DNA of 33,641 bases, taken from sequence record AJ748296.1; one strand, 5' to 3'. Positions within the stretch are counted from its first letter, which is position 1, and every line of letters begins with the position of its first letter. Shown here piece after piece: positions 1,564-32,042 of this stretch. The notes under the pieces are model-generated. The model did no database searches, was not told the DNA's origin, and worked only from the letters and a program-made list of their open reading frames with translations. The translations under genes were made by a program, and so were the position numbers.

Positions 1564-1602
1564 TTTTTTCAAGTTTGTGATATTAATTCTAAGGGTTGAA
1601 AA
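1564..1602 (+). repeat. Conserved intergenic element TTTTTTCAA-N23-TTGAAAA, copy 1
   Basis: ttttttcaa gtttgtgatattaattctaaggg ttgaaaa; near-identical copies at 27679, 30358 and 32002 in the opposite orientation. Confidence 0.85.
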
Positions 1603-1697
1603 TATGAAGAGATAAAAAGTTAGAGAGATAGAAAGATAAAAGTTTAGAGAAAGATTTAAATAGAGAGTAATACGAAATAAAAATTGAGGCGAAAAAT

Positions 1698-1970
1698 ATG
1701 CAAGTAGAAGAAATGCAAGAAAAAGTAATTAATTTAGCTCAAAAGTATACAAATCAAAAAAGATTTTTTAGATTGATAAGAAAAAGCAATATTGCCGAAA
1801 AAATTATTAAAGAAATAAGTGAGTTTTACGGAATACGTGAAGATAATATCGAATTATTCGATAATGAAATCGAATTTATGTTTAAGAAAGAATCAGTGAA
1901 GTTAATATTGAAAAAACAAGGCAATAAATTAAAAATAGAAAATATTGAAATGACAAAATCGATTAGTTAA
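1698..1970 (+). CDS. Hypothetical 90-aa accessory protein (SIRV1 ORF90-like)
   Basis: Clean ORF with GAGG RBS, preceded by AGAGAAAGATTTAAATA promoter-like sequence (1646-1662). Confidence 0.8.
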   Translation: MQVEEMQEKVINLAQKYTNQKRFFRLIRKSNIAEKIIKEISEFYGIREDNIELFDNEIEFMFKKESVKLILKKQGNKLKIENIEMTKSIS

Positions 1971-2117
1971 ATTTCATAATTTTTTTCTTTTTCTAAATTT
2001 AGTCCAATTTATGCCGAATTTTTTTCATTTTCCAAATATTATTCCAAGAGGTTGAAAATATTGAGAGATGAAAATATAAAATTGTCATAGTTTTATCGAA
2101 AATATAGTGAGAAAAAA

Positions 2118-2426
2118 ATGGAATTTGAAGATTTAGATGTAGTTCTATATGTATTTTTTGAAAATCCAGAAATGAAAAGTTTTGAATTTGAATTTAAACA
2201 ATTATTTGAAACTACTGAGAGCGGTTTAAGATATCTGATAGGAGTTCCAGATTCAAGAAATAAAATCAAAAATAATAATGAAATTATTGAAGAATTTATA
2301 TATTATCAAAATGATGATATTGTTACTAAGTTGATATTTTATTATACTAAAGGCACGAATAGAATTTATATAAGAAAAATTTACGGCTGGAAAGAGAAAA
2401 GATTAGAGTCTGAAGATGAAGAATAA
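2118..2426 (+). CDS. AcrID1-family paralogue, 102 aa
   Basis: MEFEDLD..L..FFENPEMKSFEFEF start and EFIYY..KLIFYY....IYI..I..W end match the AcrID1-like pattern at 31642; acidic. Confidence 0.65.
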   Translation: MEFEDLDVVLYVFFENPEMKSFEFEFKQLFETTESGLRYLIGVPDSRNKIKNNNEIIEEFIYYQNDDIVTKLIFYYTKGTNRIYIRKIYGWKEKRLESEDEE

Positions 2427-2476
2427 TTAATCAAAAATTTATAAAAATGTCATATATTGAAAAATTAGGTGACAAT

Positions 2477-2677
2477 ATGGTAAAAAGATTAAAAATTCTG
2501 ATAGATAATGAGTTCAGTAATCTTATAATTGAATTTAAGAGAAATGTTAAAAAAAGTTTTGAAGGTGAAGCTTTTGTTACTATTGGAATTGATGAAAACG
2601 ATAAGATATCTTATATCTCAATAGAACCGTTAGATAAAGATCTAAAAGAAGGAATAAAGAGAATTAAAGTTCTTTAA
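2477..2677 (+). CDS. Small protein (66 aa from ATG 2477), DUF2283-like pattern
   Basis: GGTGA RBS before 2477; the track start at 2447 overlaps a TGTCATA promoter box. KILID..NLIIEF and VTIGIDENDKISYISIE resemble DUF2283 (recall). Confidence 0.65.
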   Translation: MVKRLKILIDNEFSNLIIEFKRNVKKSFEGEAFVTIGIDENDKISYISIEPLDKDLKEGIKRIKVL

Positions 2678-2726
2678 TATTTGACAATTTTTTAAAATCA
2701 ATATTTAAAAATGTCATGTTTTTATA

Positions 2727-3044
2727 ATGAATTATATGATTTTCAATTCATTAATTGTTCAAAAATATATTTTAAATAATGCAAAAGCAGTTGCTACAAT
2801 TAGGAAAAAAGGTTATTATAAATTATATCAAAAAATTATTTTGAAAGTTGGAGATAAAAGATTTTATGGAAAAGTTATCGCAAAAGCTCCAGTTACTGAA
2901 TATTGTCTTTCAAAATATGTGAAATTTAGCGGATTTGAAAATGTTGAGAATTGGTTAAATGAAGCTAAAAGACTTCATAATGATAAAATAGATTTTGAGA
3001 GATATGAAATTATTGTAATTTGGATAAATGATTCATTCTTCTAA
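2727..3044 (+). CDS. ASCH/PUA-like domain protein, 105 aa
   Basis: KAVATIRKKG, VGDK and KFSGFENVENWLNEAKRLH match the ASCH pattern K.ATiR...GD...eGF.s.eef. Confidence 0.65.
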   Translation: MNYMIFNSLIVQKYILNNAKAVATIRKKGYYKLYQKIILKVGDKRFYGKVIAKAPVTEYCLSKYVKFSGFENVENWLNEAKRLHNDKIDFERYEIIVIWINDSFF

Positions 3045-3953
3045 TTCTATACTATTTTTCTTTTTATTTTGTTGTTTCTCTTTCTTTAACTCATTTGCAA
3101 TTTTATAGTTCTGAATTATTTCAGTTACTAAACTATCAAGTCTCATTTTCCTTAATTTTTCTGCATATATCGTATATTTATTTTTTATATTCCAATTATT
3201 ATATTTTAAAATCCAGGCATTCATAGTTTTTAAAATTTTTACATTTGAGAAATCATATTCAAATGGAAAATTTGTTTTATCTAAGAATTCGAAAAGTTTC
3301 TCTTCTTCTTCTTTTGTTAAAGTTCTTTCTTTTCTATCTCCTACATATCTTCTAGTTCCATCAAACCAAAAAATTTCACGATAGCTTGCTGTTTTTGTAT
3401 AAGTTGTAGTATCCATAGAGTTAGCCGTATCAAAAATTTGAAGAAAATATGGAGCAGACATACCTAGAACATGTAGTCTTTTTACATATTTTCTAATATA
3501 ATAATACCACGGAAATGTATAAATTAAAATTTTTAATTTACTAGATGCAATTATTCCGCCAAATGCAATATAATCAGTATATTGGCTATAAAAATCTATA
3601 GCTTCATCTACTTCTCTAGTTGGATAAAGATGTATAACTGGGATAATTCTTTCTATATATTCCATTTTCGTATATAGATATTCGAAATATTCAAAATTCT
3701 TTCTATCAAGAGGAGAAAAAATAGATGGAATATCAAGAGAAAAAAATGCATAAGCATTATACGTTTTGTATTTTTCTAATACATCTTTTACTGAAATTTT
3801 TAAATTGTATAACGCAATTTGATAGCCACCGCTATCGACCCAAGTTTCATTTTTCCAGGTTATCTTTTTGTTTCGTAATTGATTGATCAAAATTGGAAAA
3901 TTTATTTTAATTAATAAATCTTGTGATGAGACAATTCCAAATACTATTTTCAT
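3033..3953 (-). CDS. TGT/DpdA-like guanine transglycosylase (SIRV1 ORF306)
   Basis: Motifs WVDSGGYQ, SLDIP, IPVIH, AFGG, HVLG, MDTTT of the TGT TIM barrel; no CxCxxC zinc site. Confidence 0.85.
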   Translation of the reverse strand: MKIVFGIVSSQDLLIKINFPILINQLRNKKITWKNETWVDSGGYQIALYNLKISVKDVLEKYKTYNAYAFFSLDIPSIFSPLDRKNFEYFEYLYTKMEYIERIIPVIHLYPTREVDEAIDFYSQYTDYIAFGGIIASSKLKILIYTFPWYYYIRKYVKRLHVLGMSAPYFLQIFDTANSMDTTTYTKTASYREIFWFDGTRRYVGDRKERTLTKEEEEKLFEFLDKTNFPFEYDFSNVKILKTMNAWILKYNNWNIKNKYTIYAEKLRKMRLDSLVTEIIQNYKIANELKKEKQQNKKKNSIELEE

Positions 3954-3961
3954 ATAGCTTT

Positions 3962-5161
3962 CTATTTTGGTATGACATTTATTTTACTTTTTCTTAATAA
4001 GTATACTATAGCTCCTATTATTGGTAATATCATAATTCTTAATATTGTATATTCTATATTTCCGGCAATTACAAATTTATAGAATATTGGATTTTGATAT
4101 CCTAGATAAAAGAATAGGAATATCTGAATTGCTAAAGATGTTAGAACTATAGAAAATAATTTTTTATCATTCATAAGTTTCAAATATGCAAATGCTACAA
4201 TTATGAAGTTCCAAAATATGAATAATAATCCGTCTAGTCCGAAAGATATGTTAAATCCTAGCAAGTTTTCTAGAACATTTGCTATTGTTTCTGTTGAGAA
4301 AATTAGCAATAAAACATTTGGATTTATTTTGCTAAATTTTTCTGGTAATACTTTATCAAAACTCATAGTTTGAATTAATCTACTTTGGATTTTATTTGCA
4401 ATTGGCATGTAACTAAAGAACCAAATTGGCATTAGTGCAAACAATATGTTTAAATTTGAATAGCTATCTAGAATTGATAATATTGCTACGACACCATAAC
4501 TTACAAAATATCCTATCATACTTGATTTTTTAATATTTTTAATTTCTCCAGCTATATAACTAATTGCATTTATGAAAATGAAAGCAGATAAATCAAATAG
4601 TAAAGCAGATAATAAAGTATTAGAAATTGTGAAAGTCTGATATTGATAATTGAAAGATTTAAAAGCTATAAATATTGCAATTATTATTTGGAATATTGCT
4701 AATATGTCTACAATTTTTGCATATATTCTCTTACTTGCTATAATTAGTAAAACAAGAGGAAATAGAGATTCGACAATTAGAAATTGTTCAAATTGATTTT
4801 GAATATTAAAGTTTAAGAGTACAAGATCTCCTAAGATTGGCTGAGATAGTACATATGTTAGCCATAATGAAATTCCAAAAATTGTGTAAAATTTTGAAGA
4901 AAATGCAGTTCTAATATAGGCGTAATCACCGCCATTTAATGGAAATTTTGTTGTTAGTTTATAGTACATTAAAAGAAGTGGAATTTCAAATACTGCTCCA
5001 ATTACAATTGCAAAAAGTAGATTTACATTTTTCATTAGACTTGAAACAAATAACGGATAACTTATTCCGCTTAAAATTCCCATATAGAGAAGATTTATTG
5101 AAAAAATATCTAAAACATTAAATGATTTAATTATTCCAGAACTTTTTCTTTCTAATTCCAT
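3962..5161 (-). CDS. APC-superfamily amino-acid permease-like membrane protein (ORF399)
   Basis: About 11-12 hydrophobic segments; N-terminal RKSSG..KSF..LD.F..NL..MG..SG..YP and P.NGGDY.YI motifs of archaeal APC permeases. Confidence 0.8.
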   Translation of the reverse strand: MELERKSSGIIKSFNVLDIFSINLLYMGILSGISYPLFVSSLMKNVNLLFAIVIGAVFEIPLLLMYYKLTTKFPLNGGDYAYIRTAFSSKFYTIFGISLWLTYVLSQPILGDLVLLNFNIQNQFEQFLIVESLFPLVLLIIASKRIYAKIVDILAIFQIIIAIFIAFKSFNYQYQTFTISNTLLSALLFDLSAFIFINAISYIAGEIKNIKKSSMIGYFVSYGVVAILSILDSYSNLNILFALMPIWFFSYMPIANKIQSRLIQTMSFDKVLPEKFSKINPNVLLLIFSTETIANVLENLLGFNISFGLDGLLFIFWNFIIVAFAYLKLMNDKKLFSIVLTSLAIQIFLFFYLGYQNPIFYKFVIAGNIEYTILRIMILPIIGAIVYLLRKSKINVIPK

Positions 5162-5204
5162 AAGCTAGCTAAATTGCTAAGACATAAATAAAGTCACACA
5201 ACTA

Positions 5205-5222
5205 ATACATAATATAATGTAT
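5205..5222. promoter_or_regulatory. Palindromic box ATACAT-N6-ATGTAT upstream of ORF399
   Basis: atacat aatata atgtat; recurs at 10774 and 20512, with one-mismatch copies at 11498, 14097 and 24821. Confidence 0.6.
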
Positions 5223-5397
5223 ATAGTGTGTTCTTTTTATAAGTAAAACTTGATTAAATTCTTATTTATGACAACAAAATTTTTTTATAAAAATCTCATA
5301 GCAAGTAAATCAAACCATATACATAATATATATTATATAGTATATTGGTTTAAGAATTAGTTGAGAAAAAAAAGAAAATATCTTTAATTAAATTTTT

Positions 5398-5568
5398 TTA
5401 ACCGTTTCTCTTTTGCAAATACTCCTTTATAGCCTCTTCAATTGCCTGAGTTAGCTGGAGATTATTTTTTGCACAATAAACTTTTAGTCTAGTCTTTAAA
5501 TCTTTATCCATATATATACCAAATACTGCTTTTTGTTTCTTTTTTTGACTCTGTTCTTGAGTTTGCAT
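5398..5568 (-). CDS. svtR: SvtR ribbon-helix-helix transcriptional repressor, 56 aa; not in the ORF track
   Basis: Manual translation MQTQEQSQKKKQKAVFGIYMDKDLKTRLKVYCAKNNLQLTQAIEEAIKEYLQKRNG*; RHH pattern, GAGG RBS, and canonical position next to rep. Confidence 0.92.
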   Translation of the reverse strand: MQTQEQSQKKKQKAVFGIYMDKDLKTRLKVYCAKNNLQLTQAIEEAIKEYLQKRNG

Positions 5569-5592
5569 TTTTCCTCATTTTAAGATTTTGAA

Positions 5593-5952
5593 TTATGACA
5601 TTTTTATATCTTTTTTTGTCTTTAGCATATACTTATATACATTTTTTATATCGCTAATAGACTTTGGAACTAATTCAATTCTAATGTCAGAATGTGAAGG
5701 CATATGTTTGTGAACTCTAGAATAATCTAATTTTTTATTCGTGAAAACTAAAATATGATAATGTAGACCATTTGAATTTTTTGTAGTTTCTTTTATAGAA
5801 AATACATGTGAATTTTTATCATGATTATAAATATAACTACGAAATTTTCTAAATATTTTTTCAGTATCTCCATACTTATAATTAGTTGTAATAGTAATGA
5901 AATAAGTGTAAATATAAGAAAAATGAAAATTTAAAACTTTTTTCAAATCCAC
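5593..5952 (-). CDS. rep: HUH-superfamily replication initiator Rep (ORF119)
   Basis: Motif I (FITITT), motif II (LHYHILV) and motif III (YKYMLK); GTG start. Confidence 0.92.
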   Translation of the reverse strand: MDLKKVLNFHFSYIYTYFITITTNYKYGDTEKIFRKFRSYIYNHDKNSHVFSIKETTKNSNGLHYHILVFTNKKLDYSRVHKHMPSHSDIRIELVPKSISDIKNVYKYMLKTKKDIKMS

Positions 5953-6083
5953 GATATTACGTGTGAAAATGACGTTTAAAAACTTATGTTGTTGGAAAAA
6001 CGAAAGGTTTAAAAATGCTTAATCAAAAATTTTTATAAACGAGGTGACTAGAGATTCAGAGTAGAAAATATATATGCTTAAGA

Positions 6084-6320
6084 GTGCCAAGTCAGTTAAA
6101 AGAAAAATTCTATGAAAAAAGAGATGAAATAAAGAGAGAATTAGATCAGATTTTAGAAGGTAAAAGAAAGTTAGAAATTAAAGAAATTAGTGATTTATAT
6201 GATGAACAAGTTTTTTTTACTGTAGATATGCTATATTATGAAAAACTTCAAGAACTAGCAAAAAAATACAAAAAATCGTTATCAAAAATAATAAGATCTG
6301 TATTCTTTAATCTAAGTTAA
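6084..6320 (+). CDS. 78-aa protein with C-terminal RHH-like domain
   Basis: QVFFTVDMLYYEKLQELAKKYKKSLSKIIRSVF is a strand-helix-helix RHH pattern; GTG start. Confidence 0.65.
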   Translation: MPSQLKEKFYEKRDEIKRELDQILEGKRKLEIKEISDLYDEQVFFTVDMLYYEKLQELAKKYKKSLSKIIRSVFFNLS

Positions 6321-6447
6321 ATCCTTTTTTTCTTTTTCTTTTTTATCTCTCATATTATGTATTGGAAATTCTATATTTCTCTTCATATTACGAAATTAAA
6401 AAGATATAAAAATGTCATAATTAAAAGATATTTTTAGGGGAAGAAAC

Positions 6448-6843
6448 ATGGCATCCCTTAAAGAAATAATAGATGAGTTAGGAAAACAAGCTAAAGAACA
6501 AAACAAAATAGCTTCTAGAATTCTAAAGATAAAAGGAATAAAAAGAATAGTAGTACAGTTGAATGCAGTACCACAGGATGGAAAGATAAGGTATTCGCTA
6601 ACAATACACAGTCAAAACAACTTCAGGAAACAAATTGGAATAACGCCACAAGATGCAGAAGATTTAAAGTTAATTGCCGAATTTCTAGAGAAATATAGCG
6701 ATTTCCTAAATGAATATGTAAAGTTTACTCCTAGAAATAATAACGCAATACAAGAAGAAGAAATAGATATGGAACAACAAGAAGAAAAAGAAGAGAAACC
6801 AAGAGAAAAAGGCAAAAAGAAATCAGTTGAAGAGGAGTTTTAA
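6448..6843 (+). CDS. ssDNA-binding protein (SIRV ORF131, gp17 family)
   Basis: Conserved position before the ATPase and nuclease; acidic disordered C-terminal tail ending SVEEEF; GGGGA RBS. Confidence 0.85.
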   Translation: MASLKEIIDELGKQAKEQNKIASRILKIKGIKRIVVQLNAVPQDGKIRYSLTIHSQNNFRKQIGITPQDAEDLKLIAEFLEKYSDFLNEYVKFTPRNNNAIQEEEIDMEQQEEKEEKPREKGKKKSVEEEF

Positions 6844-6868
6844 AACGTCATAGCCTAATTTTTTTTTC

Positions 6869-8191
6869 ATGAGTGGAAACCAGCAAACGAACTCTCAATT
6901 GTTTGAAAAGTTAAAAAGTCATTCTTTTTTTTATAATCCAAGAGATAATGAAAGAATTTTAAGTCTAATTCTTGGAGAAAAACAAGTTGAAGAAAATAAG
7001 AAAATTGAGATTTTAAAAGCTTATAAAAGAGGAATAGATTCACAATATTTTAGTGCTAATTTGCCATATTATAACGAAATAAAATTTATTTCTAAGATAA
7101 CTGGATTTAAGGTAAAAGATGATCTAGTTATTGCAAAATTTCAAAATGGATTTACTGGTGATTTTGATCCTCATGAAATTGCAGATAATCCAGATGATTT
7201 TTACAACCTAATTTCTTCATATATGTTTGTAAAAATTAAAAAAGGATCAGAAAATTGGTTTATTGATGAAATATTTTCTATTGAACCTCCTAATAATTTT
7301 GAAATTGCAAAAGAAATTCTAGAAGAAGCTGATAAAGAACATTTAACTTATGCCGTTTTACTTCAAGCTTTTGGCTATGATTCGCAAAAAATGGATTCAG
7401 ATGATATTTTTCTAACTTTACCGCGATTATTTCCATTATTTAAATCTCCAATTACTAAGAGACAAATTAATACTATTGAAATTTCAAACCGCGGAACTGG
7501 AAAAACTACAACATTTATGATTTTACAAGAAGTTTTCAATTTCAGATATTACACTGAACCGCCGACTTATGCAAATTTAATATATGATGCTAGAAATAAT
7601 ATGTATGGTTCAGTATTTTTATCGAATGGATTAATTTTTGACGAAATACAAACTTGGAAAGATGGATATGCAGTTAAAGAACTAAATTCTATAAATTCCA
7701 CTCTTTCAACTGGAATTGAAAATTGTATATGGACTAGAGGCGCCGGTACAGAAAGTAAATCTGCTACAATTCAAAAATGTATTCCAATAATTTATGCTGG
7801 AAATCCATTTTCACTAACTCTAGATAAATATCAAACTCCAGATATAGAATCATATTTACAACAATATGAAATTTTTACGCCTGCAATTCTAGATAGAATT
7901 CATATTATTCAATTAGCAATTAAGAAAACTTATGATAAAATAATAAATGCTAGAGTTCTATATCCTTCAATTCTAAGAGCATTAGTAGAATTAATTCAAG
8001 AAAAAATTAACAGAACTACAAATTATGCAGATTGTGGGAATTTGGAAAGTAGGAGAAAAGAACAATCTATAGATATTCAAATAGTTCTACAAGCACTTGA
8101 TATAGATCTGCAAATTGGAAAAGTTTCAAATGAAGAAGTATGTAATAAAATTGTGAATTTAATGAGATTTAGTAATTTAGGAGGATGGTAA
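6869..8191 (+). CDS. AAA+ ATPase, BrxL/Lon_2-like (ORF440, gp18 family; ssDNA annealing)
   Basis: Walker [10 protein letters not shown], Walker B LIFDE, sensor YAGN, arginine finger ILDRIH. Confidence 0.88.
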
Positions 8192-8808
8192 TCATGAATT
8201 ATGAAGATCATATAAAAGAAAGCTTTAAAGTTAAATATCCTGCAGATACGATTTTTCCATCTGAAGTTGGTATTTGTTATAGAAAAAGTTATCTTGCTAG
8301 AAATATTGAATTTGAAAGAGGAATAAATGAAATTTATTTAGATTTAGGAGAACAATATCATGAGAGAATTGAACAATATTTTAAAGAAAAATTGAATTGT
8401 CAAACTGAAGTTGAAATTAAAGATGAAATTGAAGGAATAAAAATTAGCGGTAGAATTGATATAGTTTGTAATAATGACTTATTGGAAATTAAAACAATTA
8501 GTTATAATTATTTTCAAGTAAAAGAATATCACTTATATCAAGTTGCATTATATTATCATATTCTTAAAAAGCAAAATTATCAAATTAATAATGTCTATAT
8601 TATATATTTAAATAGGAATACTAGAGAAGTTAAGCAATTTAAAATTGATGAAAAAGTTTTAGAAAATTATTATCAAAAAGTTATTGAATGGATAAAGAAA
8701 TTTAAAGAATATCTAAAAGAAACAGATTATAAAAAAGTCCCAGGAGTTAACAATTATATTTGTAAATCATGTGAATTTAAACAAAAATGCATTATATCAC
8801 TTTTTTAA
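8185..8808 (+). CDS. Cas4-like RecB-family nuclease (ORF207, gp19 family)
   Basis: N-terminal Cys (GICYR), G..YH, GRIDIV, LEIKT, QVALY and C-terminal [10 protein letters not shown] Fe-S cysteines. Confidence 0.92.
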
Positions 8809-8871
8809 TGAAAAAATAGAAGAGTAAAAAGGTATTTAAATGTCATATTCGAAAAACTTAAAATAGAGAAC

Positions 8872-9293: not shown

Positions 9294-9312
9294 AAATTAG
9301 GGTGAAAAAAAC

Positions 9313-9849: not shown

Positions 9850-9858
9850 TTTATTTTT

Positions 9859-10335: not shown

Positions 10336-10347
10336 CTTTTCTCAGTT

Positions 10348-10653: not shown

Positions 10654-10773
10654 ATTTTAGTTAAGCAGATATGACAATTTAATAGTTTTGTGTATTACAT
10701 TATATAGTATAATATATAGTATATAATTTCCGGGATTATTTTCATAGTAATTTTTACAAATCTTAGTAGTCAT

Positions 10774-10791
10774 ATACATTATATTATGTAT
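10774..10791. promoter_or_regulatory. Palindromic box ATACAT-N6-ATGTAT upstream of the coat-protein gene
   Basis: atacat tatatt atgtat, 50 nt before the ATG at 10842. Confidence 0.6.
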
Positions 10792-10841
10792 AAGACGTGA
10801 AAATTTATTAATTTAAAGAATAAAATTGATATTGACCAAAA

Positions 10842-11246: not shown

Positions 11247-11280
11247 AATATTTAAGCTATTTTTTTCTTTTTTTCTTTAT
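11247..11280. terminator. T-rich convergent terminator between MCP and the zinc-finger gene
   Basis: Run ttttttcttttttcttt directly after the MCP stop. Confidence 0.5.
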
Positions 11281-11444: not shown

Positions 11445-11576
11445 AAGGAGAAATTTGGATTTGACATTTTTAAATGCTATTAAATCCAATCAACCATATA
11501 CATTATATAATATATATGAATTATAGGTTAAGTTGTTAGTCAGCTTTATTTTTGTCATAATTTTTATTTTTATCTC

Positions 11577-14044: not shown

Positions 14045-14133
14045 ATGATATCTTTTATTTCAAGCCGTTAAAAAATATACAAGTAGCATAACTCATATAT
14101 ATTATATAATGTATATAGTGTCTGAATTTTGTG

Positions 14134-20436: not shown

Positions 20437-20511
20437 CAATTTCCAAACACTATATACATTATATATTTTATATGAATTATAGTTGACAGACTTACATGAG
20501 AAACAACTCAT

Positions 20512-20529
20512 ATACATTATATTATGTAT
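20512..20529. promoter_or_regulatory. Palindromic box ATACAT-N6-ATGTAT upstream of the ORF564-family gene
   Basis: atacat tatatt atgtat, 43 nt before the ATG at 20573. Confidence 0.6.
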
Positions 20530-20572
20530 TAGATTTGAGTTTTTATTTACGGCATTTTTGATATATTATATC

Positions 20573-22231: not shown

Positions 22232-23485
22232 ATGTCTTCAACTTGTTATCCAATTACTTCATTTGGAAATTTATTGAATAAAATAGCTAAACAATCTTTA
22301 ATTTCATCTCAAGTCTGGAACGAAATAGTTCAAGATCTTTATACTGCATATTCAGTTTACAAATATATAAATACAACATTACAATATCAACTTTTCTATG
22401 GAAATATATATACTCTTTATGATTTATTTAACAATTTAGATTTATATATTTTAAATGCAAAACCATATCCATTTACGCCATTAATCCAAGCTAGACCTGG
22501 ATTACCATTAACTGTAAATTACATGAATAATTTAATAAATGCAATTACGAAAGTAGCAAATGAAAATAATATAGCATTAGCAAAACCTTTAAATTTTGTT
22601 CAGTCTAATGAAATTGTAACATCTAGAAAAATTAATGATATTATATATGCAATTAATCAATTCTTAACTTTTGATTATAATACTTATTTTCTATTAGATT
22701 GTAATGGCTCACTATTTAATAATTTAATAAATTCCAAATCGGCATTTTTAAATGTATTAATTGATAATCCTTCACAAAATATTTCTACTAATAATATATA
22801 TATCAAAAATTTGATTATAAATTATTTAAATACATTTTTGAATTTTTATGGAAGTTCAGCTATCGATAATCTTTTAGTTGGAAAAACTTATACTAATTTC
22901 GGAATAAATACATATGATAACTCATATATTCAAAAAATTATAATGTATCAACTTTATGGTTTAATAGAAACATATAATAATTCATATATTCAAAAAATTA
23001 TAGTTAATGAACTTAATGGTGCAATAGAAACAAATGATAATTCATATATTGACACAATTATAGTTAATCAACTTAATAATGCAATAAATGCATTTGATAA
23101 TTCGTATATTAAAACAGTTATAATTAATCAATTTAATGGCAGTATGTATATACTTTCATATATTGATACAATTATATTTACTCAACTTTCTATATATCTG
23201 CCCATAAATACTGGTAATCATATAGGAAATCTTATAATTAATACAAATTATGGAACTCCAGAAATATCTGATAGTACAGTTCTACAAAATTTTATAATTG
23301 ATACAAATTATCAAGAAATAGATATAGATGAATACGCAATTATAAAAAATCTTATAATTAATACAAATTATGGAACTGTAAAAATATATGATAATGCAAT
23401 TGTTGAAAATTTGATATGTAAACAAAATTATGGACAAATACAAATAAGCGGAAATGCACAAGTAATAAATAATAATTGTCAATAA
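22232..23485 (+). CDS. 417-aa protein with C-terminal 20-aa beta-solenoid-like repeats
   Basis: Repeats DNSYIQKIIMYQLYGLIETY / NNSYIQKIIVNELNGAIETN / DNSYIDTIIVNQLNNAINAF and NLIINTNYGT x2. Confidence 0.85.
   Translation: MSSTCYPITSFGNLLNKIAKQSLISSQVWNEIVQDLYTAYSVYKYINTTLQYQLFYGNIYTLYDLFNNLDLYILNAKPYPFTPLIQARPGLPLTVNYMNNLINAITKVANENNIALAKPLNFVQSNEIVTSRKINDIIYAINQFLTFDYNTYFLLDCNGSLFNNLINSKSAFLNVLIDNPSQNISTNNIYIKNLIINYLNTFLNFYGSSAIDNLLVGKTYTNFGINTYDNSYIQKIIMYQLYGLIETYNNSYIQKIIVNELNGAIETNDNSYIDTIIVNQLNNAINAFDNSYIKTVIINQFNGSMYILSYIDTIIFTQLSIYLPINTGNHIGNLIINTNYGTPEISDSTVLQNFIIDTNYQEIDIDEYAIIKNLIINTNYGTVKIYDNAIVENLICKQNYGQIQISGNAQVINNNCQ
22916..23380 (+). repeat. In-frame 60-bp tandem repeats inside ORF417
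   Basis: Units at 22916, 22976, 23036 and 23096; exact 31-bp duplicate at 23227-23257 and 23347-23377. Confidence 0.85.
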
Positions 23486-24768: not shown

Positions 24769-24899
24769 ACAATTTTAATAAGTAACTGACTAAAATAAAG
24801 TGTCACATCTTATAACTCATATATATTATATAATGTATATGGTTTGTTCTCATTTAGATCATTTAAAATTAAAATATGTCATATTGTTTAGAAATTATT

Positions 24900-25505
24900 A
24901 TGAAAATTTTCACTTTTGTTGGATTTACAAAACATTTAGATGAACTAGATTTTGATTACGTAGTAGTCGATAAAACTTTTAATGATATGTCTGATGATCA
25001 AATCAAAAAATATCAAGAAAAAATAATTTGGATCATGACAAATACAGAAATAAGATGGTTGAGAATTGCAAAACAATTATTAACAATTGTAAATTTTGCA
25101 AAAAATATAGAAGATGATATAATTGCAATTATTGATAGTGATTTAATTATACCAAATTTAAGAGAAATTATTCCAAACGAAAGAATTTTTACACCGTGCT
25201 ACTGGCTTTATTACGACTGGGCAAATGAAATTAGACCATTTTGTAGTGGTACAAATTATATTTTCAGAAAATCATTACTACCATATCTGGAATATACAAT
25301 AAATACATATATAGAAAATGAATATTATAAAGAAATACCAGTTGATATTTTTATCCATAATTTCATTCCACATATGAATATATTAAAATTAGGAACTATT
25401 CATTATGTAAAAACTCCAATTGGAGAAATAAAAATGGAATTTAGATATGAAGATATTCAACAAATTTTCAAACATATCCCTGAATTTGTACTTCTGATAG
25501 GTTGA
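24900..25505 (+). CDS. Putative GT-A glycosyltransferase (ORF209 family; likely start MKIFT at 24900)
   Basis: YVVVD and IIAIIDSDLII (DXD motif); the track start at 24876 overlaps the TGTCATA box. Confidence 0.65.
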   Translation: MKIFTFVGFTKHLDELDFDYVVVDKTFNDMSDDQIKKYQEKIIWIMTNTEIRWLRIAKQLLTIVNFAKNIEDDIIAIIDSDLIIPNLREIIPNERIFTPCYWLYYDWANEIRPFCSGTNYIFRKSLLPYLEYTINTYIENEYYKEIPVDIFIHNFIPHMNILKLGTIHYVKTPIGEIKMEFRYEDIQQIFKHIPEFVLLIG

Positions 25506-25512
25506 TCTAGAA

Positions 25513-26583: not shown

Positions 26584-26856
26584 TTACCGAGACCTCCAAA
26601 AATCAATTTCGATAATACAGACTTTGTTATCTTTCCAAAAATAATTAATTATTGAATGAATATTGTTTCTATATTCATAAAAATCAACTGTTCTATTTTT
26701 TTCAGCATATCTATACGTTAAATCACCATCTTTAATAATTTCTTCAAATTGATTATACGAAACTATTATTTCTTTATTTAACATTAAATTCATTCTTACT
26801 ATCGTCTGATCCTGGAAAAATTTCTCAACAATTGATTTTAATTCTTCAAACTCCAT
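26584..26856 (-). CDS. AcrID1-family paralogue (90 aa from MEFEEL)
   Basis: MEFEELKSIVEKFF....EII..Q FEE....DFYEY...INYF.KD.KV.IIEIDFWR; GGTGG RBS. Confidence 0.7.
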   Translation of the reverse strand: MEFEELKSIVEKFFQDQTIVRMNLMLNKEIIVSYNQFEEIIKDGDLTYRYAEKNRTVDFYEYRNNIHSIINYFWKDNKVCIIEIDFWRSR

Positions 26857-26868
26857 TTTTACCACCTC

Positions 26869-27156
26869 TTATCTTTTCTCACGAAATAGATCAATTTCTA
26901 GAATATGTATAAAACCTTTTTCTTTAAAATAATAAATAATAAGTTTAACAAGTGTATTTGATAATTCATAATATACAAACTCATCTGATAATACCCAAGG
27001 ATCTTTATCTACAAAAGATAGATTTGGTCTTCCTACTAATTCGTTATACTCATTTTCTGAAACTATTAAAGGTCTCTTAAAGGCTAAAGTTAACTCATTA
27101 AGATTTTTTTCTTTAAAAAACATGTCTATAATTCGTTTAACTTTTTTCAAATTCAT
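26869..27156 (-). CDS. AcrID1-family paralogue (95 aa from MNLKK)
   Basis: KRIIDMFFKEKNLNELTL.F.RPL.VSE.EY.EL....DEFVYYE..KLIIYYFKE....ILEIDLFR. Confidence 0.7.
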   Translation of the reverse strand: MNLKKVKRIIDMFFKEKNLNELTLAFKRPLIVSENEYNELVGRPNLSFVDKDPWVLSDEFVYYELSNTLVKLIIYYFKEKGFIHILEIDLFREKR

Positions 27157-27305
27157 TTCCTGTTTCACCTATCTCTAAAAATCAAAAATTCTATGACATT
27201 TTTATATCTTTATTTTTTGGAATAAGTAGGATTAATATTTGGAATTTGAGAAAAATTATCGATAGAATTAGGTAATGTTAAAAAATAAAAAAAATAAAAA
27301 AAAGA

Positions 27306-27608
27306 TTAACTTTCTAAAAGTAATCTAACATAATCTACAATATCTTCTTTTATGCACAAAAATTTCTTGTCTCTTTTAACTCTTTTTATCTTTATGAAAA
27401 AGATATTTTTATCAACTAATCGTTTTATTCTAAGATATCCGAAATATTGGTATCGATTTGCATCCTTTTGAAAAAGAAATAGTTTACCTTCACTAGTGTA
27501 CATAGGAATGCATAAATCATTATCGCTATCTTTCTGTGCAAGAGAAAAAAATCTAATCAGAAGTTCTTTTTGCTTAGGATACAATTTAATTTGGACTTCT
27601 TGACTCAT
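27306..27608 (-). CDS. 100-aa protein (SIRV ORF112 family), possible winged helix
   Basis: Start MSQEV after a GGTGA RBS; early-type promoter at 27641-27660; LYPKQKELL and [13 protein letters not shown] suggest a wHTH (weak). Confidence 0.7.
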
Positions 27609-27640
27609 TTCTTTCACCTTAATATCATATATGTATAAAC

Positions 27641-27660
27641 TCATATATAAAGCTTTCTCT
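27641..27660 (-). promoter_or_regulatory. Early-type BRE+TATA promoter AGAGAAAGCTTTATATATGA
   Basis: Same motif at 29552-29572, 31425-31444, 31964-31984 and 32331-32352. Confidence 0.7.
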
Positions 27661-27678
27661 ATCTTTTTATCTCTTTAA

Positions 27679-27718
27679 TTTTTCAACCTTCTGAATTAAT
27701 ATCATAAACTTGAGAAAA
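27679..27718 (-). repeat. Conserved intergenic element, copy 2
   Basis: tttttcaa ccttctgaattaatatcataaac ttgagaaaa; 23-bp spacer. Confidence 0.8.
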
Positions 27719-27812
27719 ATTATTGATAAAATTAGATAATTTATGGAAAATTTAAAATTAGAAGAATTAGAATTAGTATTGAAAAAATAAAAAAAATTAT
27801 TAATAAAAAAAA

Positions 27813-28538
27813 TTAATCTTTTGGATTCTTTTTCGGTACGGGATGTGAAAACAATAACCATTTACCGCCAAATTCTGTAAATCCAACATTATCATGTTCT
27901 GGCGAAATAATTTTTACAACTGGTGGTTCTGGTAAATATACTAAAGCTCCTTCTCCCGGCATTATATGTAATTGTTTATATTTTAATACATTAATATCAA
28001 ATTCAATAATATGATTATAAATACCAATTATTCTAGTTTTTTCAAAAAGTTCTTCATTAATTTTTTCTATCTTTAACGGCGGTACTTCATATACACTTAA
28101 ATGTCCTTGTTTACCATCAGGATAAAATGCCGGCGAAAATTCTAATTTTTCTCCTTTATAATAAATATCAAATAATTGAATTGAATAATTATCATACTTT
28201 ATTATTATTGATGAACTCTTTAATGAAACTTTAGATAAATCTAAATTTATTAACATTGATTTAATATCATTAATTTTTCTGAATATTTTCTGTTTGAAAG
28301 TAATATTGAATATCGGCGGATTAGGTGTATAGTATATTCCGTTAGTTTCCTTAGCTTTATCAACTTTTATTTTATTTTCTAGAATTGATACTTCAAAACA
28401 GCCTTGAAATGTTAATCTACTTCTTGAAATGTACTTTTCACAATTTATAAATTTATCTGTTACAGAAATTTTATTTCCATCAGGAAGTAAAAAAACATTT
28501 GGAAGATAATCTAATTTTTTTCTTTCTTTTATCTCCAT
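27813..28538 (-). CDS. AcrIIIB1-family anti-CRISPR paralogue (ORF241)
   Basis: Shares RKKL..LP.VFL, SRS.LT..GC, GIYY.P.P, QGHL, PG.G.L.Y.PE and WLLFSH motifs with ORF252; position just downstream of pvap as for SIRV2 gp48. Confidence 0.75.
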   Translation of the reverse strand: MEIKERKKLDYLPNVFLLPDGNKISVTDKFINCEKYISRSRLTFQGCFEVSILENKIKVDKAKETNGIYYTPNPPIFNITFKQKIFRKINDIKSMLINLDLSKVSLKSSSIIIKYDNYSIQLFDIYYKGEKLEFSPAFYPDGKQGHLSVYEVPPLKIEKINEELFEKTRIIGIYNHIIEFDINVLKYKQLHIMPGEGALVYLPEPPVVKIISPEHDNVGFTEFGGKWLLFSHPVPKKNPKD

Positions 28539-28772
28539 TTATTTCACCAATTTATCATTCTGTATATGACATTTATAAATTTTTATTTAAGTTTTTACGT
28601 TTATATCTCATTATTTTTGTATTTTTTTATACTTATAATTTCTGTAGAAATACAATTAATATAACAAAAATGAGAAAAATTATTGATAAAATTAACTATT
28701 TAGAAGAAAATTTAAAATTAGAAGAATTAGAATTAATATCTAAAAAATGAAAAAAATAGTTGATAAAAAAAA

Positions 28773-29531
28773 TCAATCTTGACCTGATCTCCTGGGTCTT
28801 GTATGGCTGAACAATAACCAAGTGTCTCTATTAACGTTAACTTCAACTTCTTTATGGTCAGAACTTTCAAGTTTAACGTGAACATCTTCTGGAACATAAA
28901 GTAATGTCCCACTACCTGGAGTAACGTAAAGGTTCTTAAACATCAATATAGACTTATCAAAGGTAACTTTATGGTTAAAGATCATAAATTCGCTAACTTC
29001 CGTAAACAATTCTTTATTAATCTCTCTTTTTTGACCATCATTATCATAGTAAAGTAAATAAACATCTTTCGGCTCTGGAACACTATAAATCCTAAGATGA
29101 CCCTGTTCTGCAAGTAACGGAAATTCATAAATCAATCCTTTGAAATAAATATCAAATACTTCAATTGAATAATTGCTATATTTTACCAATAACCATGGTT
29201 GCCTTGGCGAAATTTTCGATACGTCTAAGCTCATTAAAAATTGTTTCAAGTCATCAAGATTCCTAATCGCTTTCTGTCGAAAAGTAATATTGATTATTGA
29301 AGGATGCGGAACATAATAAATTCCTTTGACCTCTTTCAGAGTATCAATTTTTAACATTGATCCGACTGTATAGCCTGTCACACAACCTTCTTGGGTTAGT
29401 CCAGATCGGGATACGTAATGAACACAGTTTATATAATTCTTGTCTAATGTAAACTTATTTAAATAGATGTCCAAAAAAACTTTGGGTAAATTGTTTAACT
29501 TTTTCCTTACACTTACCTCCACTTTATTCAC
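28773..29531 (-). CDS. acrIIIB1: AcrIIIB1-family anti-CRISPR (ORF252)
   Basis: About 250 aa, directly downstream of pvap as SIRV2 gp48; C-terminal WLLFSHTRPRRSGQD; early-type promoter at 29552-29572; GTG start. Confidence 0.75.
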   Translation of the reverse strand: MNKVEVSVRKKLNNLPKVFLDIYLNKFTLDKNYINCVHYVSRSGLTQEGCVTGYTVGSMLKIDTLKEVKGIYYVPHPSIINITFRQKAIRNLDDLKQFLMSLDVSKISPRQPWLLVKYSNYSIEVFDIYFKGLIYEFPLLAEQGHLRIYSVPEPKDVYLLYYDNDGQKREINKELFTEVSEFMIFNHKVTFDKSILMFKNLYVTPGSGTLLYVPEDVHVKLESSDHKEVEVNVNRDTWLLFSHTRPRRSGQD

Positions 29532-29669
29532 CGATATATAATATGCTAATTCTCATATATAAAGTTTTCTCTATGTTTTTACATTTCTATTTTTCATCTT
29601 CAAAACTTGAAAAAAATAAAGAATCAGAATATAAAAAAGATTAAAAAAATAATACCTTAAAAATTAGAA

Positions 29670-29966
29670 TTACTTAGCTTGAGAACTTGGATTTTGATCT
29701 TTTGCTTTTTCTCTAGCTAATGAATTTACATCTCTTAATGTATCCATATTGAGAAGTGCATTTATTCCAGTTACTGTAGTATCTTTAATACTTTCAATAG
29801 CAGTAACTGTAGATTTTGTCATTTGATCAACAGCTTTAGCAAAATTCTCATTAGATTGCTTTTCATTATAAAGATGTACTATTTCTCCAACTACAAAACT
29901 ACCAATTAGTATACCAGTAACTGCAAAAAATCCATATAGTGCACCTTCTAATAATGTTATTGCCAT
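29670..29966 (-). CDS. pvap: PVAP (P98) virus-associated pyramid egress protein
   Basis: 98 aa; N-terminal TM ALYGFFAVTGILIGSFVVG followed by EIVHLYNEKQ...AIESIKDTTVTGINALLN. Confidence 0.95.
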   Translation of the reverse strand: MAITLLEGALYGFFAVTGILIGSFVVGEIVHLYNEKQSNENFAKAVDQMTKSTVTAIESIKDTTVTGINALLNMDTLRDVNSLAREKAKDQNPSSQAK

Positions 29967-30045
29967 TTTTGGTCAAATAATATTATCAAGAACTAAATAA
30001 TATAGTTTTCTGTAAATTTAAAGAAATAAAGAATTTTTTAATTCT

Positions 30046-30300
30046 TTAAGATTTTTTAGTACGCAATATTTGAATTTCATATAATAAAGCTTTTTCATTA
30101 TCTGTTAACTCTTTAGTATTAATTTTTATTTCAATATTATCATTTGAAGAATAAATAAATTGACTAAATGCTAATTCAATTAATTGTTGATATTCTTCTT
30201 CATTAATTTCAAAAGACATCTTAAATTTTAAACTTAATTCTTGTATATTAGAATCTTCAAAAAACAAATCTATAATTTTTTTAACTTCTTTAAAACTTAT
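30046..30300 (-). pseudogene. Shortened AcrID1-family paralogue with ATA where the ATG is expected (pseudogene or non-canonical start)
   Basis: GGGGA-aagaaaa-ATA-AGT-TTT-AAA-GAA; the frame has no ATG before residue ~27 of the family-aligned region; the track TTG start at 30336 lies in the TGTCATA box. Confidence 0.55.
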
Positions 30301-30357
30301 TTTTCTTTCCCCAATATTTTCATAAAAATATGACAATTTTAAATTTTTATCACTCTA

Positions 30358-30398
30358 TTTTTTCAACCTCCAGAATTAATATCACAAACTTGAAAAAA
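30358..30398 (-). repeat. Conserved intergenic element, copy 3
   Basis: ttttttcaa cctccagaattaatatcacaaac ttgaaaaaa; perfect 9-bp inverted ends. Confidence 0.88.
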
Positions 30399-30484
30399 AT
30401 TATTAATAGAATTAACTAATATTTAAAAAATAAAAAATAGAACAAAATAAGAATTAAATAAAAGAAAAAGAAAAAAAGAAAGAA

Positions 30485-30793
30485 TTACTTTTGAATTGGT
30501 TTATTTATGAATGGATTTAATTTTTGATTAAAGACTTCATCTGCATGTGAAAGTGCTAAAATATTAGCATTATTATCATAAATTATGTATAATTGATAGA
30601 AATAATGACAAACTTCTTCGGCATCTCTGTAAAGTTCTTGTAAAGAATTCCAGACTATACCATATGCCGTAATTAGACCATATTTTGGAAGTTTATTATA
30701 GCAGTGTGATACTAAAATTTCATCATTATATGTGACTAAAATTTCTAGACTTTCTTTATTTACATTTATTCCAGGTATCATTATCTTTCTCAT
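30485..30793 (-). CDS. Hypothetical 102-aa accessory protein
   Basis: GTGATAG RBS-like sequence; TGTCATA box at 30820-30826 (minus strand). Confidence 0.75.
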   Translation of the reverse strand: MRKIMIPGINVNKESLEILVTYNDEILVSHCYNKLPKYGLITAYGIVWNSLQELYRDAEEVCHYFYQLYIIYDNNANILALSHADEVFNQKLNPFINKPIQK

Positions 30794-30987
30794 TCTCTAT
30801 CACTAAATTTCTCTAAATATATGACATTTTTATATTTTCATTTAACAAAATCGATAAGAAGTAGAATTAATATCTGAAAAATGATAAAAATTAAGCATAG
30901 TTATAGGTATATACAAAAAATAAAAAAGATAAAAGAGAAAATAAAATTAGAGAAGAAAAAAATGAGAAATTAACTTAAGAAAAAAAA

Positions 30988-31392
30988 TTAATATAACTCT
31001 AACTTAACCCAGCCCTTACTCACACTAAAAACATATAATTTTGCATGAGATATCAATTCTCCCTCATAATCGTTACCACTTTTATGTAATATCACAACTA
31101 CTCTACTTTTTGGTATAATTACATAATCAACTTGGTCAGTACTGGGATAGTTATAAATTTTATCGATTACTATCTTTTCCACTTTTCCATATAGTATTTG
31201 CATTTTTCCATAGTCACTGAAACTGCTACCTGGTCTACTCCATTCGCTAATTCGCAGTAGAAATTTAGCCTCTGGACTACCTTCTTGTAACGTCTTTTGA
31301 ATCAATTGCTTTAACTCGCTTTCATTTAACTCTTCTTCACTTAAATTAATTTCTTGATCTGAATTTTGACTTGAATTTTCTTCTTGACTCAT
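30988..31392 (-). CDS. Hypothetical 134-aa accessory protein with acidic low-complexity N-terminus
   Basis: GGTGGA RBS; early-type promoter at 31425-31444. Confidence 0.8.
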   Translation of the reverse strand: MSQEENSSQNSDQEINLSEEELNESELKQLIQKTLQEGSPEAKFLLRISEWSRPGSSFSDYGKMQILYGKVEKIVIDKIYNYPSTDQVDYVIIPKSRVVVILHKSGNDYEGELISHAKLYVFSVSKGWVKLELY

Positions 31393-31641
31393 ACTTTATC
31401 CACCATATTTACATATGTAAAAAGCAATATATAAAGCTTTCTTCATTTTTTTACATCTCCATTTACATAATAAATTGCATTTTTGATATACATAATATGA
31501 TAAATAAGCTTTATCTCTTAATATTTTTAATCTCCTGGAATATTATAACAATAGTGATAAAAATTAAAGATAGAATTGGATAATTAGAAAAAAAATAAAA
31601 AAAGGAAATTGAAATGAAATTAGAAAATTAAAAAAAGAAAT

Positions 31642-31932
31642 TTACTTTTTCTCTTCTCTCCAGAAATGTAATTCTAACACGAATATTTTATCATCATATC
31701 TATAATAATCAATCTCTAACTCTAAATATTGGTTCTCGAATTCCCACCATTCGTAAAAGTCACTATAAATTTTATTATTAATAACTTGCTGTAATAGTAT
31801 AGCATTTTGTATTAATTCTTTAAACTCTTGCTCATCTAGTTCAACTTCTGGTGAGAAAATTAGATCTACTTCCCATAATTCGGAATTTTCGAATATGGGA
31901 CTTAACATATCTTTTAACGTTTTATACTTCAT
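31642..31932 (-). CDS. acrID1: AcrID1 anti-CRISPR (type I-D Cas10d inhibitor) close homologue, 96 aa from MKYKT
   Basis: MKYKTLKDMLSPIFENSELWEVDLIFSPEVE...FYEWWEFENQYLELEIDYY..DDKIFVLELHFWR matches AcrID1 as recalled (IFENSE, EWWEFENQYLE, KIFVLEMHFWR); early-type promoter at 31964-31984. Confidence 0.9.
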   Translation of the reverse strand: MKYKTLKDMLSPIFENSELWEVDLIFSPEVELDEQEFKELIQNAILLQQVINNKIYSDFYEWWEFENQYLELEIDYYRYDDKIFVLELHFWREEKK

Positions 31933-32001
31933 TTTTCTATCACTTCTTTTATATCTGATCTTTCTCATATATAAATCTTTCTTCATCTTTTCATGTCTCT
32001 A

Positions 32002-32042
32002 TTTTTTCAATCTCCAGAATTAATATCACAAACTTGAAAAAA
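32002..32042 (-). repeat. Conserved intergenic element, copy 4
   Basis: ttttttcaa tctccagaattaatatcacaaac ttgaaaaaa. Confidence 0.88.

Follow-up and report, generated by a model that had tools for sequence, protein, structure and literature searches.

The two terminal arms of the genome of SIRV1 variant XX (AJ748296.1; the window analysed here is the whole sequence of 33,641 nt), a virus of a hyperthermophilic archaeon, carry repeated copies of a 41-bp element that is most aptly seen as the joint in a recurring terminator-promoter module belonging to the early anti-defence regulon. This module, of about 190 bp, probably also supplies homology for general recombination, as do the promoter-early stem-loop (PeSL) cassettes of T4-type phages. 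The half of this finding that marks the regulon has already been published (Bhoobalan-Chitty 2024, PMC11065993), and the upstream 41-bp part may lie within the published logos. The new half, namely the module as a substrate of homologous recombination that would delete, duplicate and swap cassettes, is supported by one published deletion in register with two copies and by the clustering of junctions at the element. The element is not an integron-like site.

Four copies of the element had been reported in the first-pass annotation of this DNA, and direct reading of the sequence confirmed their coordinates and strands. A 37-mer consensus with at most three mismatches retrieved three of the four (none expected in 100 shuffles), and a position weight matrix retrieved all four at 54-62 bits, the fourth (27677-27719, copy 2 in the list below) scoring 53.8 bits. 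All four have the arms TTTTT(T/C)TCAA and TTGAAAA at a spacing of exactly 23 bp; the 23-bp spacing and full complementarity of the arms, which had been described as general, were found to hold for the best copies and not beyond them, only 5 of 47 unique versions having all nine arm pairs. The six degenerate relics proposed earlier were also recovered, five by the matrix and the sixth (29590-29617) as an internally deleted copy, together with one further partial copy at 28714-28756. Every copy is oriented like its downstream gene, that is, toward the genome centre. The core, taken for this purpose as about 3.1-26.5 kb, had been said to be free of the element, and no matrix match of at least 10 bits and no nhmmer match with E<1e-3 was detected there in XX, SIRV1, SIRV2 or SIRV3; an 8.7-bit match within ORF241d (28143-28185) lies outside the core, in the right arm, and is probably due to chance. 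The copies in XX are as follows, promoter types A and B being defined further below.

1563-1605, plus strand: element copy 1 (56.9 bits), upstream of open reading frame (ORF) 90 (phrog_13653; AcrID1 family according to Supplementary Data 1 of PMC11065993)
2019-2061, plus strand: diverged copy (48.2 bits) upstream of ORF102a (DUF1374/AcrID1 family), followed by a type-B promoter (GATGAAAATATAAAATTGTCATA)
27213-27255, minus strand: relic found by the matrix upstream of ORF95 (DUF1374), with the right arm altered to TTCCAAAAAA
27677-27719, minus strand: element copy 2 (matrix), upstream of ORF100 (homologue of SIRV2 gp47)
28637-28679, minus strand: relic found by the matrix upstream of ORF241d (phrog_6092, AcrIIIB1-like), left arm and centre only
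28714-28756, minus strand: extra partial copy found by the matrix (left arm and centre), 77 bp upstream of the preceding relic and within one unit with it
29590-29617, minus strand: internally deleted copy (TTTTTTTCAAGTTT joined to TGAAGATGAAAAATAG) upstream of ORF252, from the profile and reading of the sequence
30357-30399, minus strand: element copy 3 (matrix), upstream of ORF96 (DUF1374 paralogue with ATA at the homologous start codon), with a type-B promoter
30848-30890, minus strand: relic found by the matrix upstream of ORF102b, left arm and centre only
31521-31563, minus strand: relic found by matrix and profile upstream of ORF134b (phrog_10536), about 60 bp from its type-A promoter (31393-31463)
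32001-32043, minus strand: element copy 4 (matrix), upstream of a 96-aa AcrID1 homologue (31642-31932)

The repeat around these copies is longer than 41 bp. Repeat analysis gave six families of 135-190 nt, and an nhmmer profile seeded with 27600-27810 and iterated twice yielded a model of about 190 positions in which the element, as a 43-mer, occupies positions 78-120. Matches to this profile were found at 13 places in XX, all in the arms, each upstream of a gene, and none in the core. About 90 matches lie in the arms of XX, SIRV1, SIRV2 and SIRV3 and in five SIRV1 variant fragments (AJ703801-05), and a diverged unit was also identified in usarudiviruses, ARV2 and AFV9. Among 82 unique units, mean pairwise identity was 0.65-0.80 in every segment, being highest in the left arm (0.80) and reaching 0.65 in the centre and 0.68 in the right arm; the element is therefore no island of conservation within the unit. 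Rather than standing as an element by itself, the 41-mer is the central and often best-matching stretch of the module, and the four copies first reported are simply those in which this stretch is best kept. The units of XX are listed below.

27606-27794, minus strand: best full-length unit by profile, with T-tracts, element (78-120), purine-rich region of the transcription factor B recognition element (BRE), TTTATATA (146-153) and a 5' untranslated region with GGTGA
1223-1308 and 32298-32383: units matching the nhmmer profile in the promoter half only (aca8)
1488-1628 and 1979-2080: other units of the left arm (nhmmer profile)
27167-27305, 28539-28754, 29524-29672, 30339-30459, 30808-30948, 31393-31463 plus 31510-31608, and 31930-32118: other units of the right arm (nhmmer profile)

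The order terminator, element, promoter, gene, as proposed in the first-pass annotation, is visible in the unit as T-rich tracts, element, BRE region, TATA box and 5' untranslated region. On the 5' side of the element, the T-rich tracts are accompanied by a conserved AATTAGCTAA..TAT...TAA stretch, and on its 3' side stands a purine-rich segment, AGAGATAAAAAG.TAGAGAAAG, at times doubled as a 24-nt block; the TATA box, TTTAWATA, lies at positions 146-153 and the leader ends in GGTGA-N-ATG. Two types of promoter follow the element. Type A reads AGAGAAAGNTTTATATA and is located about 25-50 bp 3' of the element, its copies agreeing with the core promoter of TTTAWATA plus purine-rich BRE described in PMC11065993; type B reads GATAAAAAT(T)TAAAATTGTCATA, is located about 10 bp 3' of the element, continues after the TATA box with TGTCATA, and follows the copies at 2019, 27213, 30357 and 30848. 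A systematic count of the distance from element start to TATA box gave 41-120 bp, with 67, 81, 91 and 105 as common values, and ruled out the fixed spacing suggested by a hand count of 68 nt in three genera. The 24-nt block (GAGATAAAAAG.TAGAGAAAG) is tandemly doubled at 1606-1654 and in many SIRV2 and SIRV3 units, where it appears as nhmmer matches split at profile positions 143/120; doubling moves the TATA box by 24 nt (67 versus 91, 81 versus 105), and the doubled block could be a repeated factor site.

The claim that the element marks accessory and anti-defence cassettes was borne out by the matrix and profile positions taken together with Pfam and PHROG scans of the downstream proteins; at both genome ends the module stands in front of almost all accessory or anti-defence genes. 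These scans assigned ORF102a, ORF94, ORF95, ORF96 and the 96-aa ORF114b to DUF1374 (AcrID1 family), both ORF241d and ORF252 to phrog_6092 (AcrIIIB1-like), ORF90 to phrog_13653, ORF100 to phrog_21188 and ORF134b to phrog_10536; ORF102b had no Pfam or PHROG match, and ORF98, which encodes the late pyramid protein, lacks a unit. Since DUF1374/AcrID1, phrog_21188, phrog_6092 and phrog_10536 proteins all stand behind units, and Aca8 behind the promoter half, the unit precedes unrelated genes. This bears on the idea that the element has no function and that the likeness of its copies reflects only the common descent of duplicated gene-plus-intergenic units, mostly acrID1 paralogues, helped by gene conversion. 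Many downstream genes are indeed DUF1374 paralogues, heavy duplication of acrID1 is noted in PMC11065993, ORF241d and ORF252 resemble a tandem duplication in which the unit was copied together with the gene, the element is conserved no better than its flanks, and copies 3 and 4 of XX differ at 1 of 43 positions, as against about 9 in the orthologous SIRV1 copy, which resembles conversion. Such descent would nevertheless not explain a unit in front of unrelated gene families, nor an identity of about 65-80% across genera whose intervening coding sequences no longer align, as neutral AT-rich intergenic DNA would not stay so conserved; we regard this explanation as quite improbable.

The recombination role of the module is best illustrated by SIRV2M, for which spontaneous deletions of 1491-5474 and 32426-33939 and a later spontaneous one of 5678-8557 have been recorded (Table 1 in Mayo-Munoz et al. 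2018, PMC6315595), the terminal genes of SIRV2 being dispensable according to the same source. The matrix placed element copies of SIRV2 at 1479-1521 and 5463-5505 on the plus strand and at 32382-32424 and 33930-33972 on the minus strand. The left deletion has exactly the length of the 3984-bp interval between the copies at 1479 and 5463, and its joint falls in register within a 13-bp left-arm run, ATTTTTTTCAAGT, that is identical in both copies. Read from these coordinates, the left deletion is an unequal crossover between direct repeats inside the element, and under an in-register crossover the junction should read TTTTTTTCAAGT joined to CTGTGATAAT. In the accessible literature, which did not include the original description of SIRV2M (He 2018), no statement tying the deletion ends to a repeat was found.

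Junctions between isolates were then located by two-rate fitting of one change-point to every pair of element-bearing units with their flanks, taken from different arms, in which one side was at least 94% and the other at most 80% identical. Of 25 qualifying pairs, 18 had the change-point at -5 to +55 of the element start, a stretch of about 20% of the scanned range; one of the others was at -10 in the T-rich region, and six were at +58 to +124 toward the TATA box or start codon. The cluster held when the windows were moved by -90 or +90 bp (5/6 and 11/16, respectively). Individual cases agree with it. The copy at XX 32043 is 100% identical to AJ703801 through the element and 56% identical beyond, the switch of homology between the right arms of XX and SIRV1 lies inside copy 3, and the ORF241d cassette, which XX and SIRV1 have and SIRV2 lacks, has a unit on either side, both of which align to a single SIRV2 unit. 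Within one genome, the longest exact match between non-allelic units was centred in the element in 84 of 201 pairs, the element making up 23% of the unit. Mosaic junctions between isolates gather within the element or along its 3' edge; whether breakpoints map there had been a check proposed in the first-pass annotation. In SIRV2 at 4863-4962, an orphan unit cut within the element is followed by gp09 in opposite orientation, an arrangement suggestive of a past inversion or insertion at the element.

The earlier suggestion of a recombination site therefore stands in so far as the SIRV2M deletion and the 18 of 25 change-points point to copies acting as joints, and falls in so far as it implied a dedicated, integron-like site. 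A dedicated site-specific recombination site resembling attC, or the inverted ends of a miniature mobile element, would account for the inverted 9-bp ends and for the position at cassette boundaries. Nevertheless, a Pfam scan of 36 proteins, among which ORF1070 and some small ORFs were not included, detected no domain of an integrase, recombinase or transposase, and inspection of the four copies revealed no flanking target-site duplications. The junctions are spread over about 70 bp rather than fixed at one phosphodiester bond, and the one documented crossover lies in a 13-bp run of identity, as homologous exchange predicts. The hairpin of the arms, at -6.6 to -9.2 kcal/mol (37 C), is weak for a virus of a hyperthermophilic host, and its pairs show no compensatory changes. 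We consider such a site extremely unlikely.

For the inverted ends noted in the first-pass annotation, no sign was found that selection keeps them complementary. Among 47 unique copies, the left-arm C (TTTTTCTCA) present in 19 faces an A in the right arm in 17 and a G in one, and the right-arm G has been lost in 16 copies with no compensating change. A hairpin or cruciform was accordingly rejected for its weak and non-significant fold energy (z-scores -0.5 to -1.9) and the lack of covariation, and Rfam gave no match at the gathering threshold in the whole window. The right arm is gone in many copies and in most distant relatives: most copies of usarudiviruses, ARV2 and AFV9 keep TTTTTYTCA-N2-TT-N4-ATAYTAWTTC and not GGTTGAAAA, the full form including the right arm being present in a few metagenome contigs. 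The arms are largely a T-run opposite an A-run, and the inversion is probably incidental.

The left arm agrees with TTTTTYT, a Sulfolobus termination signal defined on SSV1 transcripts (Reiter, Palm and Zillig 1988, as cited in PMC9608457). TTTTT(T/C)T was found in nearly all of 50 unique copies, and the T/C variation falls exactly at the Y position. After the stop codons of the terminal genes, a first TTTTTYT tract follows within 1-21 nt, usually then a second, and the left arm comes third, at +49 to +94, where it might act as a fail-safe terminator or insulate the next promoter. On the opposite strand, the left arm together with its upstream flank forms a small conserved frame of nine codons, (M/L)KKIIDRIS*, seen at 27720-27800, 28680-28760 and equivalent places; it was judged non-coding, with starts of ATG, TTG, GTG or CTG, a stop at codon 10 in most copies and no codon-like variation. 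One antisense copy (28671-28751, plus strand) is a 26-aa frame, MRKIIDKINYLEENLKLEELELISKK.

Taken together, we favour a module that separates the single-gene transcription units of both terminal arms and reads, in the direction of transcription, as two TTTTTYT tracts past the stop codon, the element with the left arm as third tract, a purine-rich BRE region, a strong TATA box and, last, a brief leader that carries a Shine-Dalgarno sequence. The T-tracts would end or insulate the upstream transcript, and the rest of the module would drive immediate-early transcription of the downstream anti-defence gene; the centre (ATAYTAWTTC) and the right arm may bind a factor. As modules stand in direct orientation along each arm, with their longest identical runs in the element, they serve as portable homology for general recombination, in which unequal crossover between copies deletes or duplicates a cassette and crossover between co-infecting relatives swaps the gene between two modules. 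A dedicated recombinase would not be needed, and the virus encodes an Hjc Holliday-junction resolvase, a PD-(D/E)XK Cas4-like nuclease, an ATPase and an SSB-like protein.

Several observations weigh against this explanation. The right deletion of SIRV2M measures 1513/1514 bp and not the in-register 1548 bp, although a 17-bp identical run is available there; its end at 33939 is in the right arm of one copy, and 32426 is 2 bp outside the other, which points to a joint made without homology or else to an error in the published coordinates. No element lies at either end of the third spontaneous deletion, 5678-8557. The change-points are not independent, representing about eight distinct positions at about five loci. 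BLAST ends of alignments with at least 92% identity over at least 120 bp fell in the element in 2 of 31 cases, with a coverage of 8%, and are thus not enriched; we judged this test uninformative and biased outward, because alignments run on through the homologous unit. As a terminator, the left arm is the third T-tract after each gene and so may be redundant, and the conserved non-T positions (TCA, ATAYTAWTTC) go beyond what termination alone would need. The terminator, insulator and upstream-promoter roles are predictions from the sequence.

The regulatory side of the module has been described in part. According to PMC11065993, early anti-defence genes including acrID1, acrIIIB1 and aca8 have a consensus regulatory sequence, are transcribed immediately after infection (data for SIRV2) and may be repressed at the shared sequence by Aca8. 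In that work, MEME motifs of 30-100 bp were sought within 100 bp upstream of start codons, genome by genome and with XX included, and the consensus string used for a scan of the host genome was GAAATAGAAAGKTTTATATA, the type-A BRE/TATA. The promoter half of the module matches this string, and all 13 units have the same single-gene, non-operon location at both termini as the published sequence. The text of PMC11065993 mentions no upstream 41-bp part, terminators, recombination or inverted repeats in SIRVs, and its supplementary text gives no motif sequence besides the BRE/TATA string, though figure logos may include part of the element. The supplementary table assigns ORF55 and ORF67 to Aca8 and ORF90 and ORF114b to AcrID1, and the lists of that work name CAG38821 and CAG38866 as Aca8 and CAG38822 and CAG38865 as AcrID1. 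In our Pfam/PHROG scans, ORF55 and ORF67 are winged helix-turn-helix proteins (Aca8) at the outer end of both arms, next to the terminal repeats.

1-1210, partner 32432-33641: exact inverted terminal repeat (ITR), from repeat analysis
1306-1473, plus strand: aca8 copy, encoding a 55-aa winged helix-turn-helix protein, whose promoter has only the BRE/TATA half in common with the unit
32133-32300, minus strand: second aca8 copy (Pfam/PHROG scans)

Degenerate homology runs on past the exact ITR through the first unit on each side (1217-1626 and 31980-32389), and the annotated ITR boundary of SIRV1 (2026/30283) falls inside an element copy, the counterpart of the XX copy at 2019-2061.

The first-pass annotation had offered an operator or activator site as one reading of the element, and either role is unproven. 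As an operator, the element would be bound at its inverted arms by a dimer of the 55-aa Aca8, shutting off the early regulon about 1 h after infection. In favour of this are the presence of aca8 at the outer end of both arms, the repression proposed in PMC11065993, and an element that has inverted arms and is confined to the regulon; Aca8 binding is so far a prediction in the accessible literature, in which no mapped site was found. However, the aca8 promoters match only profile positions 105-191 and lack the left arm and centre, which are kept in ARV2 (KP282675) and AFV9 (EU545650), both listed among the viruses without Aca8 in PMC11065993. The right arm is lost in many icerudivirus and most usarudivirus copies although Aca8 is encoded there, and the half-sites are mostly T and A runs without covariation. 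Archaeal repressors usually overlap or follow the BRE/TATA, whereas the element is 41-120 bp upstream of the TATA box at a variable distance. The aca8 promoters without the element, its presence in ARV2 and AFV9 and the variable TATA distance speak against both an operator for Aca8 and an activator site of the stereospecific kind; the operator reading appears decidedly unlikely, as does Aca8 as the partner of the left arm and centre. Directly after the TATA box, a box GAGTTTATACATATAT was noticed at 1255-1300, 27612-27650 and 32305-32340. It is common to both aca8 promoters and to several type-A promoters (ORF100 and, in part, ORF134b and ORF252), is not in those of ORF90, ORF114b or ARV2, and by its position is a better candidate than the 41-bp element for the Aca8 operator.

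The left arm and centre could instead be an upstream activating site for a conserved Sulfolobales host factor that boosts immediate-early transcription. Early genes must be read by the host machinery alone, and a precedent is the host protein Sta1, for which SIRV1 promoters offer binding sites both at the core and some 30 bp upstream. This part is also conserved in a lipothrixvirus and among rudivirus genera of Icelandic, Yellowstone and Italian origin; it invariably precedes promoters of the GAAAGNTTTAWATA type, and the stretch that separates the two diverges. Against it stand the TATA spacing, which is not fixed, the about even conservation of the unit with no island of constraint, and the element itself, in which no match to the Sta1 consensus ATNT-N8-WNAT was seen by eye. 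A pattern scan of a genome collection returned no Sulfolobales record, and thus no host chromosome, among the 80 of 110 matches listed. We rate a host-factor site at the element as rather unlikely. Copies on host chromosomes or in CRISPR spacers were rejected, as the matches listed were chance hits in AT-rich bacteria or came from assemblies contaminated with SIRV3. Small contigs 99.4-100% identical to SIRV3 were found in assemblies of Streptomyces gamaensis CGMCC 4.7304, Aquimarina litoralis JCM 15974, Colwellia asteriadis JCM 15608 and Paenochrobactrum glaciei JCM 15115, and are almost certainly SIRV3 DNA contaminating the sequencing runs.

A further idea is that the left arm and centre form a joint recognised by a protein across the Ligamenvirales, coupling termination or insulation to activation of the next cassette and acting, for instance through a nick or a stalled complex, as a preferred start of recombination. 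We hold this to be very doubtful; if true, filamentous archaeal viruses would have a built-in shuffling of anti-defence genes between co-infecting genomes, with the role of integrons or PeSLs taken by a dedicated cis site.

Two gene models beside the units deserve comment. ORF112 (27306-27644, minus strand) has its annotated ATG at 27644 inside the TATA box (TTTATATATG); the true start is likely the ATG at 27608 after GGTGAAAGAA, and the resulting 100 aa match the ORF100 annotated in AJ703804 and AJ703805. ORF96 (30046-30336, minus strand) has an annotated TTG start at the TATA/GTC box, upstream of any likely transcription start, an ATA codon where its paralogues have ATG, and a Pfam DUF1374 match limited to residues 3-56 of 84; it is possibly a decaying AcrID1 paralogue. 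Tandem 60-nt repeats inside the coding ORF417 (22921-23460) are unrelated to the element.

The core has a repeated motif of its own, palindromic, of about 24 bp (CATATAYATTATATWATGTATA) and unlike the arm element.

5202-5225, 10771-10794, 11495-11518, 14094-14117, 20451-20474, 20509-20532 and 24818-24841: core intergenic copies of CATATAYATTATATWATGTATA, with a weak copy at 31487-31508

It gave 15 strand-matches (0.06 expected), and its sites include those before ORF399 and before ORF134a, the gene of the coat protein. With seven core sites, the core thus has its own promoter-linked element, different from the one in the arms, at which a middle or late regulator or host Sta1 could bind.

Arrays of units, including full elements with the right arm, were also observed in four hot-spring metagenome contigs, one of which (Ga0080003_1002483, 8357 bp) holds eight. 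The genes between these units had no BLAST match to XX, SIRV2, SIRV3, SIRV8 or ARV2 except for promoter-sized stretches in two of the other three contigs, and are candidates for unexplored anti-defence cassettes.

Rudivirus arms are the home of the known archaeal anti-CRISPR genes AcrID1, AcrIIIB1 and AcrIA3 and of many uncharacterised anti-defence candidates, and their gene content varies even among variants isolated from a single host. Were all cassettes flanked by this recombination-prone module, fast gain, loss and exchange of anti-defence genes would have a simple mechanism, and the spontaneous loss of such genes in laboratory stocks, as in SIRV2M, would be explained. Promoter-based searches for anti-defence genes would also gain an upstream signature that tags type-B genes and retrieves cassette arrays in unclassified metagenome contigs.

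Among known systems, the published consensus of PMC11065993 concerns the same virus group and the same genes, lies upstream of single genes at both termini and has the same core of BRE and TTTAWATA; it differs in that the string GAAATAGAAAGKTTTATATA spans the BRE/TATA only and is not matched by the type-B promoters that carry the element. The Sulfolobus terminator TTTTTYT resembles the left arm, variable position included, whereas the conserved TCA and the next 30 bp of the element are outside that signal and termination is here only predicted. Bacterial Aca operators are inverted repeats that overlap the promoter and occur also at the aca promoter itself. The likeness to them consists in a small helix-turn-helix regulator beside anti-defence genes with a promoter-linked repeat; the XX element, by contrast, is far upstream rather than promoter-adjacent, is missing from the aca8 promoter and does not co-occur consistently with the regulator. 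Integron attC sites are likewise repeats with imperfect inverted ends between small, promoterless-looking cassettes, but the cassettes of XX have their own promoters, and no integrase, conserved fold or fixed crossover point was found.

The closest comparison is with the PeSL cassettes (Arbiol 2010, PMC2839356; Comeau 2014, PMC4122927), in which an early promoter and a terminator form a composite motif that stands in many copies in hyperplastic regions of small non-essential genes, and recombination between copies deletes, inserts or replaces the genes in between. The XX module is archaeal, with an oligo-T signal instead of a stem-loop and BRE/TATA instead of sigma-70, and has no sequence relationship to PeSLs. 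Even so, sequence signals that would serve termination (TTTTTYT tracts) and early transcription (BRE/TATA) stand together in one motif, many copies lie in variable, non-essential regions, and recombination between copies is seen behind the differences of close relatives, in the SIRV2M deletion, the change-points and the ORF241d cassette. This makes the module a functional counterpart of PeSL cassettes and, building on a regulatory half that was published before, extends the PeSL principle from T4-type phages to archaeal viruses.

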